This document shows positions 1 through 55,932 of a DNA stretch of 64,000 bases, piece by piece. A program made the position numbers and the translations under genes. Every line of letters starts with the position of its first letter. The first letter of the stretch is position 1. The notes below the pieces were generated by a model. That model had not been told where the DNA came from. It did no database searches and was given only the letters and a program-made list of their open reading frames with translations. The stretch lies in the sequence record KJ019146.1; one strand, given 5' to 3'.

Positions 1-930
1 ATGAGCTTCGCAAACCTAAAGAAACAGTCCTCCCTTGGTTCTCTCACTGAGAAACTTGTGAAGGAAGTCGAGAAGATGAATAATACACAGTCCGGTGGTG
101 AAGACGACCGTTACTGGAAACTCACATGTGATAAGTCACAGAACGGATATGCAGTTATCCGTTTCCTCCCTGCACCAGACAGTGAGGATATGCCTTTCGT
201 GAAACTATACTCCCACGCCTTCCAATCAAAGGGTGGTTGGTTTATCGAAAACAGTCTAACTACACTCAATCAGAAAGATCCTGTATCTGAGTATAACTCT
301 GAACTCTGGAACAACGGAACTGAAGCAGGTAAAGAACAGGCACGTAAGCAGAAGCGTAAGCTCACCTATATCGCTAACATCTACGTAGTGAAGGATCCAG
401 CTAACCCTGAGAATGAAGGTGGAGTATTCCTCTACAAGTTCGGTAAGAAGATCTTTGACAAACTCATGAGTGCAATGCAACCTGAGTTTGAAGATGAAGA
501 AGCCATCAACCCCTTTGATTTCTGGGAAGGTGCAAACTTCAACCTCAAGGCTAAGAGCGTTGCAGGTTATCGTAACTACGACTCCTCTGGATTCGGTAAG
601 GTTACTCCTCTCAATGGAGATGATGAGGTTCTAGAAGGTGTCTGGAAGAAAGAACACTCCCTCGCTGAACTCGTAGCACCTGATCAGTTCAAGGACTATG
701 AGACACTCAAGAAGCGTATGAATCAAGTTCTAGGACTTGGTGGTACTTCACGTCCAGCTCCACAAGAAGATAGTGGTGATGAGGACATCGAATCACAACT
801 TCGTTCCTCTCGTCCTGCATTTGCTAAGGAAGAGAGTTCATACTCTGAACCTGAACTACCTTCTATGAGTTCTAGTGATGATGGAGAGACTGATGATGCA
901 ATGAGTTACTTCCAATCACTAGCTGATTAA
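1..930 (+). CDS. gp32: T4-like single-stranded DNA-binding protein
   Basis: N-terminal MSFANLKKQSSLGSL, IRFLPAP, KQKRKLTYIANIYVVKDP, YKFGKKIFDK, acidic C-terminal tail. Confidence 0.95.
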   Translation: MSFANLKKQSSLGSLTEKLVKEVEKMNNTQSGGEDDRYWKLTCDKSQNGYAVIRFLPAPDSEDMPFVKLYSHAFQSKGGWFIENSLTTLNQKDPVSEYNSELWNNGTEAGKEQARKQKRKLTYIANIYVVKDPANPENEGGVFLYKFGKKIFDKLMSAMQPEFEDEEAINPFDFWEGANFNLKAKSVAGYRNYDSSGFGKVTPLNGDDEVLEGVWKKEHSLAELVAPDQFKDYETLKKRMNQVLGLGGTSRPAPQEDSGDEDIESQLRSSRPAFAKEESSYSEPELPSMSSSDDGETDDAMSYFQSLAD

Positions 931-35879: not shown

Positions 35880-36284
35880 ATGAATAAGAACAAGCACAAT
35901 GAGACTGTAGGATCTACAGTAGAAAGATCAGACGAGAGGATCAAAGACACTGGGGAGGTATTCACTCCCCTAGAACTGTGTCGTGAGATGGTTAGTGAGA
36001 TCCCCTTATCTACCCTACAAGATCCCAACTCCACCTTTTTAGATAATTCTGCTGGCTGTGGCAACTTCCTCATCGCCCTCAGGGACCGGCTATTGGAATA
36101 TCATGAGTTATCACATATCGTAGACAATATGATCTACTGTGTGGAACTTATGGAGGACAACCATAGGGAAATATGTAAGACAATGGGTGTATCTACCGAT
36201 CATCCACACTATGTAAGGGCAAATGCACTGGAATACGATTATAGCTTCGGCAACCCCGTTGGGTTGGAAGGTTTCTTCGTGTGA
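35880..36284 (+). CDS. N6-adenine DNA methyltransferase N-terminal (SAM-binding) half
   Basis: GEVFTP (motif X), FLDNSAGCGNF (motif I), IYCVEL; ends DYSFGNPVG without NPPY; stop within the 36280 palindrome. Confidence 0.8.
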   Translation: MNKNKHNETVGSTVERSDERIKDTGEVFTPLELCREMVSEIPLSTLQDPNSTFLDNSAGCGNFLIALRDRLLEYHELSHIVDNMIYCVELMEDNHREICKTMGVSTDHPHYVRANALEYDYSFGNPVGLEGFFV

Positions 36285-36363
36285 CACCTGAATAACTGTC
36301 ACAGGGGGGCTAGACGCCCCCCTTTTTTTGTGCTATACTATTCTCATACCTAACAGAAATCTA

Positions 36364-38439
36364 ATGAACATCTACATGGTAACTACAACTGAGGGCAAAG
36401 TCTTCGGGGTGGGGCAAACTAAACGTTCATATGATGAACGACATAGGGATGGTGACTGGGCGAAGTTCCACAACTATCTGAAAGCAACCGGTGGTGAGAT
36501 GGTTCTAGTTCACTGGTGGGAAGATGTGCCAGTGGTTGATACTGACATCCACAAGTTCCTGAAGAAACAGGCTGGTATTCGCAAATATGCAGAGTGGTTC
36601 TCATATAAAGGTAACCTGGATATTATTGAAAACCTCATTCAGAATGAGTTCTTCAGTGACTACCAGGATCAAAGGATTGCCCTGAACCTAAAACCCTACC
36701 AGAGAGAGTTCGTAGCTAAAGCTCAGGCAGAATACCTAGAGTTTCTGTTAGCTGCCAAGTGTAGAGCTGGTAAGAGTGTCATGGTTCTATCTCACATTGT
36801 AGACAAAGGTCATAAGGTTAGCCTGATTGTTTCTAGATTTACTTCACCATCTCAGTCATGGGTTACTGATACTAAAACCTTTGATAGGTTTGAAGGTTTA
36901 GTAACCATCAACCTGAAAGATAAGGACTGGGAAGATCAACTCAACCACTGGTTAGATACTGATAAGCAGATCGTTCTGTGGTCTACTGTTCAGGGTGTAA
37001 TTCGTAAGATCAGTAAACTTCCCTCTGTGGATCTTCTGGTGTTTGATGAAGCCCACATTGGTGATAAGGCTAAACAGTTCACCACCCTACGTGAATCGAT
37101 GGGTGATACTCCCTGCCTGAAAGTATCAGGAACTGCCTATGATCAACTGTGGGATACTACAGAGGAGAATCGTTTTGTTTATGACTACTGGCAGGAACAG
37201 ATTGACGTTCAGAAAGGTATCATTGAACGTCCCAGGATGAGTGTGGTTCTCGCCAAGTATGAGTCAGATAAGTATTCTGAACTATATGGTTCTGACCCTG
37301 ACGCTATGAAGAACCTGTTCCTAGTGGATGGTGATGAGTTCGTGGATGAGTATTTGGTTAAGGAGTTTATCTCTAAGTATTTTGATAATAACCGTTCTAT
37401 TAAACCTAAAGATCGTCTCTTATATAACTCTAATCATATCTACATGACATTACCTTCAGTGAAGGCGTGTCACCTCTTCAAAGAACTCCTAGATTCTATT
37501 ATTCCCACTAAGGTTGTAACTGGAGATACAGGATCTGATTCTGATGATATCGATAAGTTTGTTAAAGAACATAACCGTTCTGTATGTCTAACCTATTCAG
37601 CTAACGTATTAGGAACTACCCAATCTCTCTGGGATACTGTTATCAACTGCCGTGAAGGTAAGTCAGTTCAGTTCTGGACTCAGTTCGCATTCCGTGCTGG
37701 TTCTGGTGATCATAACTGGCGGGTGATTGATTTCGTCCCCTCACGAGCATTAGAATCACTTCGTGAGACTTTCTGTCTCGCTAATGATCTAGACCCCACA
37801 CTTTCAGAGTATGAGTTCACTGACTTTGTTCCTATCCATGAGTGGAATGAGAAGTTTGAAACCCTCAGTGTAGACCAGGTAAATGATATCCTGGCTGCCA
37901 ACATTGGTTCTATTTCTTCTCTTATGAGTGGTGGAACTGAGAGTATTGATGTTCAATCTCTTTCATCGGTAGAGTTTGGTTTCTTTCAGGAATACAACAA
38001 AGAGTATACCAAATCCACCACTATCAATGAACACGATAACAATGGGGGAAGTGCTAAACAGTTAGTGAGTGAGAAGAAGAAGGGTGAGAAAACAGAGATC
38101 CAGCAGAAGATTAATACCATTAAGTTTATTCTTTCTCTCATCCCTGAAGTTATTGTAAGAGAACGATCTAATGGTAATAATGTTAATACCATTCAGGATG
38201 TTATTGACGCTGAAACCTATCAGTTAATCACTGGTGATGATACTCTGTTATCTGACCTGATTGAATCTGGTATTCTATCCTCAGCATCACTAACTCGTAG
38301 GGTGAATATGACTCGTATCAGTGTAGATTCTAGCCTAAAACAACAAGAACTCACTCAAGTTCTCTCTACGTTACAAGTTGCTACAGGTGTGCAACAATCC
38401 GTCCCAGTGGGGGTCTTTGATGATATGATTCTGGCATGA
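36364..38439 (+). CDS. GIY-YIG-like nuclease fused to SF2 helicase (restriction-type)
   Basis: NIY..GVGQT.R..ERH; AKCRAGKS Walker A variant; VFDEAH; VSGT; QFAFRAGS; ATG 36364 after cassette leader. Confidence 0.75.
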   Translation: MNIYMVTTTEGKVFGVGQTKRSYDERHRDGDWAKFHNYLKATGGEMVLVHWWEDVPVVDTDIHKFLKKQAGIRKYAEWFSYKGNLDIIENLIQNEFFSDYQDQRIALNLKPYQREFVAKAQAEYLEFLLAAKCRAGKSVMVLSHIVDKGHKVSLIVSRFTSPSQSWVTDTKTFDRFEGLVTINLKDKDWEDQLNHWLDTDKQIVLWSTVQGVIRKISKLPSVDLLVFDEAHIGDKAKQFTTLRESMGDTPCLKVSGTAYDQLWDTTEENRFVYDYWQEQIDVQKGIIERPRMSVVLAKYESDKYSELYGSDPDAMKNLFLVDGDEFVDEYLVKEFISKYFDNNRSIKPKDRLLYNSNHIYMTLPSVKACHLFKELLDSIIPTKVVTGDTGSDSDDIDKFVKEHNRSVCLTYSANVLGTTQSLWDTVINCREGKSVQFWTQFAFRAGSGDHNWRVIDFVPSRALESLRETFCLANDLDPTLSEYEFTDFVPIHEWNEKFETLSVDQVNDILAANIGSISSLMSGGTESIDVQSLSSVEFGFFQEYNKEYTKSTTINEHDNNGGSAKQLVSEKKKGEKTEIQQKINTIKFILSLIPEVIVRERSNGNNVNTIQDVIDAETYQLITGDDTLLSDLIESGILSSASLTRRVNMTRISVDSSLKQQELTQVLSTLQVATGVQQSVPVGVFDDMILA

Positions 38440-39449
38440 ACAAACCCCAAACCTTCCTAATTATCGGCGACCCTTCGGGTATCCATACACTTAGACTCAT
38501 TGAACGTGGTATTAGTCCAGACAATATCACTGTCTGGGAAGATACTACAAAGGGGATGAACTGTGTTAAAATGTCTAATGTGTCAGTAACTAACGATCTA
38601 GAGGAACTAACCGGTATGAAATTTGACGTTATTGTTGGTAACCCACCCTATGGTTCTGGTGGTAATGATGCCATTAAGTTTTTGAATAAGTGTGGTGATC
38701 TATCTGATGATGTTCGTCTAGTTCTTCCACTCTCTGTTCGTAAAGTTTCATCGGTCAATAAGATCAGACTTGATATGATTTGTGTTGAAGATAATAAACT
38801 ACCTGATGATACTTTCCCTGGTGGTATCAGAACTGTTCTCCAAAGATGGGTCAAGACTGATACATTGAGAGATAAGATTGAGACCTTTACTACACACCCA
38901 GACTTTGAGTTTGTGAGTCGAGACGAGGCAGATATTTGTCTTGGTCGTATTGGTGGTGGACCTGCTGGTAAGTTACATCGTGAGTGGTCAGAACGTGCTG
39001 ATGAGAGTCACTACTTCATCAAATATCTTGGTAAAGATGTAGAACGTAACCTCACACAGATTCAACCTGAACTCAGACAGATCGCAACCACAACGTGTAA
39101 CGGTATTCCAACATTAGCGAAGAATGATGTTGTAACCACCTACATCAAACACTTTGGTAGAGGTAAGATTGCCACACAGACAACACACCCAGACTTTGAA
39201 TTCGTGAAGAAAGGTGACCCTAACACCAACGTATTTGTGATGAGATCTGGTCACGCAGGTAAGGTATTGACAGAGGGTTATGATGATTATGAGTGGTCAC
39301 ATTACTTCATCCACGCCAAGACACCTGAGGTGATTGAGTCACTCAAACAGTGTGAGACTAAGTTCCGTGAGTTGGCTAAGATGACAAACGGTATGGATAA
39401 ACTATCTAAGCATGAGTTAGTAACAACTTATATGGAGTGTGACACTTGA
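38436..39449 (+). CDS. adenine methyltransferase catalytic half (NPPY) with duplicated target-recognition-like domain
   Basis: FDVIVGNPPY, RLVLP; TTHPDFEFV...SHYFI...VTTY twice; ends CDT* in the 39438 palindrome. Confidence 0.75.
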   Translation: MNKPQTFLIIGDPSGIHTLRLIERGISPDNITVWEDTTKGMNCVKMSNVSVTNDLEELTGMKFDVIVGNPPYGSGGNDAIKFLNKCGDLSDDVRLVLPLSVRKVSSVNKIRLDMICVEDNKLPDDTFPGGIRTVLQRWVKTDTLRDKIETFTTHPDFEFVSRDEADICLGRIGGGPAGKLHREWSERADESHYFIKYLGKDVERNLTQIQPELRQIATTTCNGIPTLAKNDVVTTYIKHFGRGKIATQTTHPDFEFVKKGDPNTNVFVMRSGHAGKVLTEGYDDYEWSHYFIHAKTPEVIESLKQCETKFRELAKMTNGMDKLSKHELVTTYMECDT

Positions 39450-39519
39450 ATAACTGGCACAAGGGGGGTAGGCACCCCCCTTTTTTTGTGCCATAATAGG
39501 TCTATACCAAACCAATACT

Positions 39520-54678: not shown

Positions 54679-55932
54679 ATGGCTCTCACTCTCCGCCCCC
54701 ACCAACTAGAAGCACTTCAGGTGATGGCTGAGACTCGTCTTGGCCAGATATTAGTTCCGACTGGTGGCGGCAAGACTCTTATCGCTATCATGGACGTTGT
54801 GAGGACTCTAGAGAACGCAGGAACCCCTCAGACTATCGTTGTGGTGGCACCTAGGATATTGTTAGCCCAGCAACTCTGTAGTGAGTATATGGAGGTTCTG
54901 AGTGATAGGTTCGCCAACGTTATCCCCGCCCATATTCACTCAGGTCACACACCTCACTTCTCTACCACTAACATTCAGAAGATCCATCTTTTCGAGAAGA
55001 TGATGGATAACGCCAACCTCCACCGCATATATTTCACCACATACAACTCACTTCCACGTTTAGCAGAAGCAGGTGTGAGTGTAGATACTATTATGTTTGA
55101 TGAGGCACATAACTCTACTCGTAATGACTTCTATCCCGCTACCAAGTATTTCTCACAGACCGCTAGTCGTTGTTACTATTTCACCGCTACCCCAAAGCAC
55201 TCTCTAACATCCAAGAGACACGGAATGAACGAGTCTGATGTATATGGACAGGTTATCTACAATGTTCCTGCCCCTACACTTGTTCAGGGTGGGTTTATCA
55301 TCCCCCCACAGGTTCGTGTTAAAGAGATGGAGTTCGTAGCTAAACATGAGCTCATCTCACAACGTGATACAAACCACCTCATCTCTTGTATTGATGGCAA
55401 CCACACGAGCAAAGTTCTAGTTTGTGCTAAGTCAGTTAAACAGATCATGCGTATGTTTAGTGAGACCGATATCAGCCAACAACTTGATGATCGTGGTTTC
55501 TCCTATATGTACATCTCAGCTAAGACTGGTGGTGTTATCAATGGTAAGAAAGTATCACGCACTATGTTCTTCGATACTCTAAACCAGTGGGGTAAGGATA
55601 ACAACAAGAAGTTCATTGTTCTTCATCATTCTATTCTCTCTGAGGGTATCAATGTGAGTGGTTTAGAGTCAGCTATCTTTCTTCGTACTATGGATCATAT
55701 CACTATCTCCCAAACGATTGGACGTGTGATTCGACTTCACAAAGATGACGCCCAAGGTATGAGAGATGGTTCGATTCGCCCTGGTGATCTTAACTCCTAT
55801 ACTAAGTCCTTTGGTTTGTGTATTGTACCAGTTTATTCGAAGACACAACAAACAGTTGCTAAGTCTCTTCAGGCAGTTGTTAATACCGTCTTTGTTGAAG
55901 GTGAAGCAGCAACCACAGTTGTGAGGCGTTAG
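54679..55932 (+). CDS. stand-alone SF2 (DEAH, ResIII-like) helicase
   Basis: LRPHQ, PTGGGKT, FDEAH, TATP, LSEGINV, QTIGRVIR. Confidence 0.9.
   Translation: MALTLRPHQLEALQVMAETRLGQILVPTGGGKTLIAIMDVVRTLENAGTPQTIVVVAPRILLAQQLCSEYMEVLSDRFANVIPAHIHSGHTPHFSTTNIQKIHLFEKMMDNANLHRIYFTTYNSLPRLAEAGVSVDTIMFDEAHNSTRNDFYPATKYFSQTASRCYYFTATPKHSLTSKRHGMNESDVYGQVIYNVPAPTLVQGGFIIPPQVRVKEMEFVAKHELISQRDTNHLISCIDGNHTSKVLVCAKSVKQIMRMFSETDISQQLDDRGFSYMYISAKTGGVINGKKVSRTMFFDTLNQWGKDNNKKFIVLHHSILSEGINVSGLESAIFLRTMDHITISQTIGRVIRLHKDDAQGMRDGSIRPGDLNSYTKSFGLCIVPVYSKTQQTVAKSLQAVVNTVFVEGEAATTVVRR

Follow-up and report, generated by a model that had tools for sequence, protein, structure and literature searches.

We analyzed a 64,000-nucleotide (nt) stretch of sequence record KJ019146 (hereafter the window), from Synechococcus phage ACG-2014f isolate Syn7803C16, a T4-like cyanomyovirus, and concentrated on three consecutive genes whose products are all annotated as hypothetical proteins in the deposited record. 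A first-pass annotation, made from the sequence alone, had suggested that these genes are a possible split restriction-modification system, in which two complementary half-methyltransferases flank a nuclease-helicase. The three open reading frames (ORFs) it listed are real:

35880..36284, plus strand: small ORF, 134 amino acids (aa); predicted free-standing N-terminal methyltransferase half, which ends just before motif IV
36364..38439, plus strand: nuclease-helicase ORF, 691 aa
38436..39449, plus strand: NPPY methylase ORF, 337 aa

Each protein has a full-length match to a phage protein family, i.e., phrog_4376 for the small ORF (end to end, E = 7e-86), phrog_22930 for the nuclease-helicase, and phrog_5172 for the NPPY protein. 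The nuclease-helicase starts at the ATG at 36364 and not at the TTG at 36328, and its stop codon overlaps the start of the NPPY gene in an ATGA at 38436-39, as noticed at first reading. We propose that the three genes probably represent a conserved cyanomyovirus restriction-modification-like module, with a plan related to Type ISP and Type IIG enzymes, that is split into three polypeptides and whose gene order in the window has been rotated by cassette exchange.

The suggestion that the three genes are a functional set is supported by their co-occurrence across phages. In 47 of the 48 nuclease-helicase loci with enough downstream DNA, a homologue of the small ORF is present 768-1754 nt after the nuclease-helicase stop codon, with the nuclease-helicase gene first, then one or two methylase genes, and then the small ORF, often followed by a gene encoding a 408-aa helicase. 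The canonical order is therefore nuclease-helicase, methylase, small; in the window this order is rotated, and reads small ORF, boundary repeat, nuclease-helicase, methylase, boundary repeat. The helicase stop and the methylase start often overlap in these loci, and in phage S-CAM7 the three genes (gp055-056-057) overlap by 8 and 4 nt, with a second small gene of the same phage located beside a separate short methylase.

Related arrangements of a GIY-YIG-methylase and a small ORF are present in T4-like Klebsiella phages. For example, the T4-like Klebsiella phage KpV477 (kpv477_030 to _028) encodes a protein listed in UniProt as GIY-YIG domain-containing, with an NPPY methylase part; next come an ORF of 111 aa and a small-ORF-like protein of 153 aa containing motif X and motif I. 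The theme therefore reaches beyond cyanophages. A pair of genes in rV5-like coliphages, annotated twice as methylase, was considered as a further split pair and rejected, as naam_195 is a complete gamma-order methylase and naam_194 is unrelated. The 408-aa superfamily 2 (SF2) helicase, found directly after the small ORF in most other phages, is located about 18 kb downstream in the window (54685-55929), and is 55% identical to the copy in the metagenomic contig L009.

Our analysis of the small ORF confirmed the presence of motif X (GEVFTP) and motif I (FLDNSAGCGNF), and the protein matches positions 20-90 of the Pfam profile N6_Mtase (E = 4.9e-4; 20.0 bits, with a cut-off of 20.4). The third ORF and its relatives match N6_Mtase/Eco57I from about position 100 onward, and because the two matches cover different parts of the profile, the complementary appearance of the two ORFs is real in profile coordinates. 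Besides motifs X and I, the small ORF has motifs II and III, and it ends in a conserved tail, ...YDYSFG.PVG..FF. This tail had been read as a broken motif IV (DYSFGNPVG), which does not hold: the consensus of 80 homologues is YDYSFGEPVG..FF, and in P0144, a fused gamma-order relative whose residues 3-126 are collinear with the small ORF, the equivalent SFDFSVFRPG is located before the true motif IV, FDVIVGNPPF. As judged from these alignments, the end of the small ORF is a natural one, shared by the whole family and located just before motif IV, and not a decayed motif IV.

An exhaustive search for relatives of the small ORF identified 1125 proteins, most of which stand alone and are 120-180 aa long, and a scan of 185,579 species-representative bacterial and archaeal genomes found no close relatives. 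Some members of the family are fused to a methylase core, and these fusions occur in both orders. In gamma-order fusions, e.g., P0144, the small domain is N-terminal in a longer protein; in the beta-order fusions P0148, P0267, and P0222 it is C-terminal, with the NPPY part N-terminal. In the gamma-order fusions P0144, P0215, and P0229, the small family and the core lie side by side and share no residues. Since the small-family alignment ends at residue ~103-126 in gamma-order fusions, with the NPPY core starting from a few to about a dozen residues further on, we place the break between the two halves in the beta3-beta4 loop. Selection on the family is purifying, with a median ratio of nonsynonymous to synonymous substitution rates (dN/dS) of 0.127 across 80 phage loci, over which the length of the small ORF is also kept and conservation of motifs X, I, II, and III is 90% or higher; the same motifs are conserved to at least this level in copies linked to a nuclease-helicase. 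Within ACG-2014f the gene remains intact, and most of the differences among isolates are synonymous, both with and without a neighbouring cassette. With a dN/dS of ~0.13, the small ORF is not a decaying pseudogene. The small proteins have in addition a strongly conserved FF end and a basic N-terminal block, KNKHN..GS.IERSDERI, and in 16 of the 80 homologues (among L018-L097) the invariant C-terminal FF is directly preceded by some 28 inserted residues with a high content of P, K, and D.

Relatives of the window genes include what are, by sequence, true complementary methylase halves. We could examine the upstream side of the small ORF in 70 IMG/VR loci. In 59 of them, an NPPY methylase ORF runs up to or into the start of the small ORF, the overlap usually being 13 or 19 nt. 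Of these partner methylases, 51 are short forms of 186-207 aa that begin with M(K/R)F..GNPPY, i.e., at beta4, seven have a segment of about 60 aa before beta4, and one has a longer N-terminal region. The 51 short forms start at motif IV and do not contain motifs X and I-III, and by sequence a two-chain enzyme in beta gene order is therefore the only reading that would make them methylases. The type example is gp36/gp37 of phage P-SSM2, in which gp36 has no N-terminal half and has a promoter-like sequence directly upstream. From its motif content, a short methylase starting at motif IV would be unable to bind S-adenosylmethionine (SAM) on its own, and together with the small protein it would form a naturally split N6-adenine methylase. 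In 51 of the 70 loci, motifs X and I-VIII and the target-recognition domain (TRD) are covered only by both adjacent genes together; this is not true of the pair in the window, where the NPPY protein has its own motifs I-III.

A protein of about 460 aa (P-SSM2 gp38; L005:4406-5794) is often present within the short-methylase module, with homologues in 29 loci, where it is encoded between the small ORF and the 408-aa helicase. Its C-terminus shows a weak match to the methyl-DNA-binding winged helix of DpnI (Pfam DpnI_C, E = 0.014), and it might be a methylation reader or a nuclease.

The second gene encodes a protein whose family numbers at least 394 members, with lengths of about 690 aa. We distinguish the following regions in it:

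residues 1-96, plus strand: GIY-YIG-like domain, a tentative assignment from a weak Pfam match
residues ~110-500, plus strand: SF2 motor, with Walker A (AKCRAGKS), DEAH box, SGTA, and QxxxR invariant
residues 578-691, plus strand: helical coupler-like region
38392..38433, plus strand: motif-X-like C-terminal helix (QQSVPVGVFDDMIL), conserved in the subfamily

The Pfam ResIII/DEAD matches of this protein are weak. Across 30 homologues there is no variation in Walker A, DEAH, SGTA, or Q..R, i.e., the protein has an SF2 motor of the kind found in Type ISP enzymes, and a Foldseek search with its AlphaFold model (predicted local distance difference test [pLDDT] 82) returned Snf2-type dsDNA translocases, the Type ISP enzyme LlaBIII (4xqk, E = 1.4e-10), and SauUSI. 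The N-terminal 96 residues contain invariant N2, Y4, F14, G17, T19, D31, K34, D59, and E77, with R26 conserved among close relatives, giving the pattern NIY..F..G.T..R..E, and their predicted secondary structure, beta-beta-alpha-alpha-beta-alpha, is compatible with a GIY-YIG domain. The Pfam GIY-YIG match is weak, being below the cut-off (E = 0.048-0.057) and found in 2 of 18 members, so that the label GIY-YIG-like given at first reading is not confirmed. The domain has no Mrr-family match.

The C-terminal tail of the nuclease-helicase, which reads ...VPVGVFDDMILA, had been likened to motif X, and this likeness is supported both by conservation in the subfamily and by a gene fusion. In the subfamily the tail follows the pattern I-P-x-x-L-F-x-x-M, with the proline present in 26 of 30 members, hydrophobic residues at +3/+4, and M, L, or I at +7 in all 30; the spacing of 7 from proline to methionine is the same as in TPLELCREM, the motif X of the small ORF. 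In phage MA01, the helicase and methylase are fused in one chain of 1074 aa, followed by a small ORF, and the motif-X-like helix of this chain is located about 15 aa before motif I. The break between the helicase and methylase genes of the window is therefore between motifs X and I.

The third ORF contains the motif FDVIVGNPPY reported at first reading, Eco57I-type methylase profiles match it from motif IV onward, and it is divided as follows:

38436..38615, plus strand: residues 1-60 (N60 segment), motifs I-III (IIGDPSG, ITVWED, TND), predicted strands beta1-beta3
38616..38885, plus strand: catalytic core, motifs IV-VIII (MKFDVIVGNPPY...), strands beta4-beta7
38886-39161 and 39162-39446, plus strand: two tandem presumed target-recognition modules, about 95 aa each, ~38% identical to each other

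The match of the window protein to the Eco57I-type methylase family PF07669 is 23.8 bits, below the cut-off of 25.3, and relatives exceed this threshold (55 bits for S-CAM7 gp056, 52 bits for MA01, and 60 bits for the methylase of isolate C22). An AlphaFold model built on an alignment of 52 sequences (pLDDT 91) predicts that residues 1-140 form a complete seven-strand methyltransferase fold, with strands at 7-10, 31-34, 50-52, 65-68, 92-98, 114-121, and 133-140 and helices in between. Residues 1-60 are modelled as beta1-beta3 at pLDDT 91-98, and Foldseek aligned the model over 150-180 columns to complete class I methylases, i.e., PH1948, METTL5, TrmN, M.TaqI, and the M subunit of EcoKI. The model thus has the Rossmann-like fold with NPPY after beta4 that is characteristic of N6-adenine methyltransferases. 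Within N60, D12 is conserved in 44, P13 in 45, and G15 in 47 of the 52 relatives, and position 35 (E35) is acidic in 48. The description of motif I as degenerate is correct for the letters (IIGDPSG), since the loop, G-D-P-x-G, is two residues shorter than the canonical form; it does not extend to the domain, for which a complete fold is predicted. The NPPY protein is accordingly not a half-methyltransferase, as had been thought, but is predicted to be a complete domain alone, with a complete pocket at the level of fold and motif X provided by the helicase tail. The enzyme encoded by the second and third genes has the gamma order of a Type ISP methylase followed by its recognition domain, i.e., motif X (helicase tail), I-III (N60), IV-VIII, and then two C-terminal modules. 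The recognition module, of about 95 aa and starting with ...THPDFEF, occurs in one, two, or three tandem copies among relatives, in both short and N60 forms (e.g., P0003, P0004, P0009, and P0012), and single-linkage clustering placed all modules in one merged cluster, with no module types resolved.

Residue 63 of the NPPY protein aligns with the start of the short forms and with the end of small-ORF homology in the fusions, and N60 and the small ORF are therefore positional alternatives and not complements. Profile-profile comparison of N60 with the small family (hhalign) detected no homology (probability below 1%), and their equivalence is one of position and predicted fold. Two near-identical metagenomic contigs illustrate the modularity. 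L009 encodes a short methylase and a small protein, L143 encodes a nuclease-helicase, an N60-methylase, and a small protein, and 90% DNA identity between them begins exactly at the Met codon before beta4 (L009:4001 / L143:8342), an in-frame module junction. From this junction we conclude that N60 travels with the nuclease-helicase, and that the core, the modules, and the small gene travel together. An internal translation start at this Met was examined as a candidate and is not singled out, as all classes conserve it, the complete gamma-order relatives too; Shine-Dalgarno-like motifs are present upstream of it in 10% of cases against a background of 12%, and are also infrequent (3%) upstream of true short genes. 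We also rejected the rule that only methylases with a degenerate N-terminal half keep a small partner: L154-L157, with a canonical motif I, have no small gene, but L153, with a canonical motif I, has one.

The location of the nuclease-helicase and NPPY genes between two palindromes had been taken as a sign that they form exactly one cassette, and the following features confirmed this:

36279..36354, plus strand: left 76-nt PeSL-like boundary repeat, comprising the small-ORF stop, the palindrome GTGACA..TGTCAC, and a G6-loop-C6 terminator with T7
36311-36339, plus strand: promoter-like site with TG-TATACT (-10-like), inside the left repeat
39437..39512, plus strand: right PeSL-like boundary repeat, comprising the last NPPY codons and stop, the palindrome, a terminator, and a -10-like box

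These are direct repeats of 76 nt, 82% identical and located 3158 nt apart, and each contains the stop codon of the preceding ORF, GTGACA..TGTCAC, a G6/C6 hairpin with a T-run, and a TG-extended -10-like box. Isolate C7 has a single hybrid copy of the repeat, with nothing in between. Boundaries of PeSL type have been described for T4-type phages (PMC2839356, PMC4122927), and both of their hallmarks are present here, i.e., a composite repeat at each end and a one-copy empty site in a near-identical phage. The palindromic element, GTGACACYTGAATAACTGKCACA, occurs seven times in the window, all on the plus strand, with 0 copies expected by chance:

32500, 36281, 39439, 45072, 47969, 52650, and 57958, plus strand: copies of the palindromic element

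The other copies are probably boundary or regulatory elements of further exchangeable cassettes in the region.

Our survey of this site covered 45 related ACG-2014f records, of which 26 contain the small ORF, and showed the following states:

2 of 45 records: nuclease-helicase and NPPY methylase cassette
14 of 45 records: alternative cassette, Mrr-like / Eco57I-type methylase / helicase
6 of 45 records: unrelated small ORFs
4 of 45 records: empty site
19 of 45 records: no small ORF and no cassette

The alternative cassette of isolate C22 (L004:5865-9233) occupies the same site as 36355-39436 of the window, and encodes a 200-aa Mrr-like protein, a 393-aa Eco57I-type methylase, and a 483-aa ResIII/DEAD helicase; the Mrr-like protein has the pattern D-x-GVDG...VQIKYK and a weak match to Pfam Mrr_cat (E = 0.12). 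Phage Bellamy carries the genes of the alternative cassette in reverse order, upstream of its small ORF. One or other of the two kinds of cassette adjoins the small gene in 16 of the 26 records that contain it, and neither is present in any of the 19 records without it. The remaining 10 of the 26 small-bearing records have no methylase cassette beside the small ORF, which does not fit a strict partnership of the small ORF with the NPPY gene. The 19 records without a small ORF have a hypothetical ORF of 125 aa at the site, and isolate C25 has both this ORF and the small ORF; the 125-aa ORF is found at L014:1456-1833 (isolate US57) and at L015:1867-2244. The small ORF itself therefore behaves as an exchangeable unit.

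Taken together, these observations suggest how the module may work. Gene 1 would encode a free-standing methylase N-terminal half (X-I-II-III); its usual neighbour is a short methylase starting at motif IV, and nuclease-helicase operons almost always have it in third place. Gene 2 would encode a GIY-YIG-like nuclease, an SF2 DNA translocase, and a helical coupler ending in a motif-X-like helix, and gene 3 an N6-adenine methylase with minimal motifs I-III, motifs IV-VIII with NPPY, and two tandem recognition modules; genes 2 and 3, which are translationally coupled, would be the two-chain equivalent of a nuclease-helicase-methylase-TRD enzyme. The recognition modules would read specific sites, methylation would mark the phage's own DNA, and unmethylated sites on the DNA of the host or of rival phages would trigger ATP-driven translocation and cleavage. 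The small subunit would most likely give a canonical SAM-binding half to the same catalytic and recognition core, producing a nuclease-free modification form. In ACG-2014f, the small gene appears to be resident beside a recombination hot spot, at which the cassette would have been inserted or exchanged between PeSL-type repeats. We infer the biological role, either self-marking combined with attack or protection from host restriction, from this architecture and from the patchy, allele-like distribution of the cassette. Beside a complete methylase, the small protein could be an alternative N-terminal half, the partner of a short isoform made from an internal Met, or an accessory or regulatory protein.

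Several points count against this interpretation. All function of the three-gene module is something we infer. The GIY-YIG-like assignment of the nuclease is a weak lead, and a PDB sequence search with the nuclease-domain profile matched nothing meaningful. Since the NPPY protein is predicted to be a complete methylase, in which N60 is the positional equivalent of the small ORF, it is not obvious where in the structure the small subunit would fit. Some complete gamma-order relatives have no small neighbour while one has, so that the association is not an absolute rule. In the window, the small gene is separated from the cassette by a terminator and a promoter-like site, and we found no other NPPY gene in the genomes of the 10 cassette-less small-bearing records. 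Many of the metagenomic loci are near-duplicates, and the counts overstate the number of independent observations.

We also considered an extension of the proposed module and three rival explanations. The extension, which we hold to be possible though on balance doubtful, is that one core makes two enzymes by swapping its SAM-binding half. With N60 and the motif-X tail of the helicase, the core would be part of a restriction complex; with the small protein, it would be a modification enzyme with the same specificity but no nuclease. The small subunit would then displace N60, or would pair with a short isoform started at the Met before beta4, and the abundant pairs of short and small proteins in other cyanophages would be the stand-alone version. 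If so, this family would be a living record of circular permutation via split intermediates.

The strict version of the original suggestion, i.e., that the NPPY protein cannot bind SAM and that a SAM pocket comes in trans from the small ORF, which would make the two window ORFs complementary halves, we regard as unlikely. It gains from the canonical motif I of the small ORF, set against an NPPY loop (IIGDPSG) shortened by two residues, from the presence of the two gene families together in 47 of 48 loci, from the motif-IV-first relatives that plainly need such a partner, and from S-CAM7, where a separate small gene accompanies each of two methylases, one of N60 type and one short. The confidently modelled beta1-beta3 of N60 and the alignment of the model to complete class I methylases speak against it; in N60, the acidic residues that contact SAM in motifs II and III are conserved, as is the D-P-x-G of motif I, and two N-terminal halves cannot fit one C-terminal half. 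The split-system idea stands for the family, through the triad association and the true halves found in relatives such as P-SSM2 gp36/gp37, and fails for the window pair, which are not simple complementary halves.

We likewise find it improbable that the small ORF is unconnected to the cassette here, either as the leftover partner of a lost short methylase or as a solo protein (e.g., a SAM-binding protein) that happens to be located at a cassette hot spot. The site is empty or contains unrelated small ORFs in 10 of the 26 small-bearing records, the cassette is bounded by its own repeats with the small gene outside them and with a terminator and promoter between the genes, and the partner class changes at least 16 times on the tree of the small proteins, all of which favours such a lack of connection. 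However, two unrelated methylase/helicase/nuclease cassettes adjoin the small gene in 16 of 26 records and are found in 0 of 19 records without it, the triad is kept in 47 of 48 loci elsewhere, and the gene remains intact with or without the cassette.

Least probable, in our view, is that no restriction is involved and that a multi-module methylase merely shields phage DNA from host enzymes, with the nuclease-helicase serving homing-like cassette spread or host DNA breakdown: one to three tandem recognition modules do recall multispecific protective phage methylases, GIY-YIG is a typical class of homing endonuclease in T4-type phages, and the cassette is patchily distributed, but the helicase and methylase are translationally coupled, share the motif-X junction, and form one chain in MA01, which points to one enzyme, a 691-aa SF2 translocase is unlike homing-endonuclease architecture, and recombination between the flanking repeats explains the empty site. 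Homing endonucleases in T4-type phages have been described (PMC2988022).

Literature searches turned up no description of these genes. If the proposed module is correct, a naturally split N6-adenine methyltransferase is common among marine T4-like cyanophages, many of which also carry a compact three-protein relative of Type ISP enzymes. Modules in cassettes that differ between near-identical phages are the pattern expected for conflict with hosts or rival phages. The occurrence of gamma-order, beta-order, and split forms in one family would provide a natural, testable case for the fragment route to circular permutation, and an exchangeable small SAM-binding subunit with stackable recognition modules would be useful for methylase engineering.

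The closest known systems are the Type ISP restriction-modification enzymes (PMC3553950, PMC4666363). The analogy drawn at first reading holds for architecture and fold, as shown by the 1074-aa chain of MA01, the one single-chain relative, and by the Foldseek match to LlaBIII; the domain order is the same, i.e., nuclease, SF2 motor, coupler, gamma-order N6-adenine methylase, and recognition domain. Type ISP enzymes are single polypeptides of about 1,500 aa with an Mrr-family PD-(D/E)xK nuclease; they translocate at the expense of ATP, cleave on collision, and methylate one strand of an asymmetric site. The window enzyme, in contrast, consists of two chains of 691+337 aa, encoded by two ORFs that overlap in an ATGA, so that the chain is broken between motifs X and I, and a small protein is added as a third component; its predicted nuclease is GIY-YIG-like and not Mrr/PD-(D/E)xK, and the module, of putative activity, has tandem recognition modules and is located in a mobile cassette of a lytic phage. 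The NPPY core is common to the window methylase and the Eco57I-type (Type IIG, PF07669) enzymes, and the window methylase does not have the fused PD-(D/E)xK nuclease of the Eco57I kind. Like the PeSL cassettes of T4-type phages, the cassette is an indel between near-identical phages flanked by composite terminator/promoter repeats; unlike them, its element has a sequence specific to this group of cyanophages, with GTGACA..TGTCAC as an additional palindrome and without an evident -35 box.

Tandem recognition modules behind one catalytic domain are also a feature of the multispecific C5 methylases of the Bacillus phages SPR, phi3T, and rho11s; the window enzyme differs in being of N6-adenine type, with the specificities of its modules putative. 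M.AquI and M.EcoHK31I are natural two-subunit DNA methyltransferases (PMC3404938). They resemble the phage pairs in that one methyltransferase fold is made from two adjacent or overlapping genes, but they are C5-cytosine enzymes split near motifs VIII/IX, whereas the phage pair is of N6-adenine type, is split in the beta3-beta4 loop between motifs III and IV, has a permuted order with the C-terminal half first, and belongs to a family abundant in marine phages. The alpha, beta, and gamma classes of amino-methyltransferases are said to be related by circular permutation, reportedly through a gene-fragment route (Malone et al. 1995; Jeltsch 1999; Bujnicki 2002). The family described here likewise includes gamma order (P0144), beta order (P0148, P0267, and P0222), and a split beta-order pair; what distinguishes it is that all three states are closely related and that the split form, the most frequent of them, is maintained by purifying selection and is therefore more than a hypothetical intermediate.

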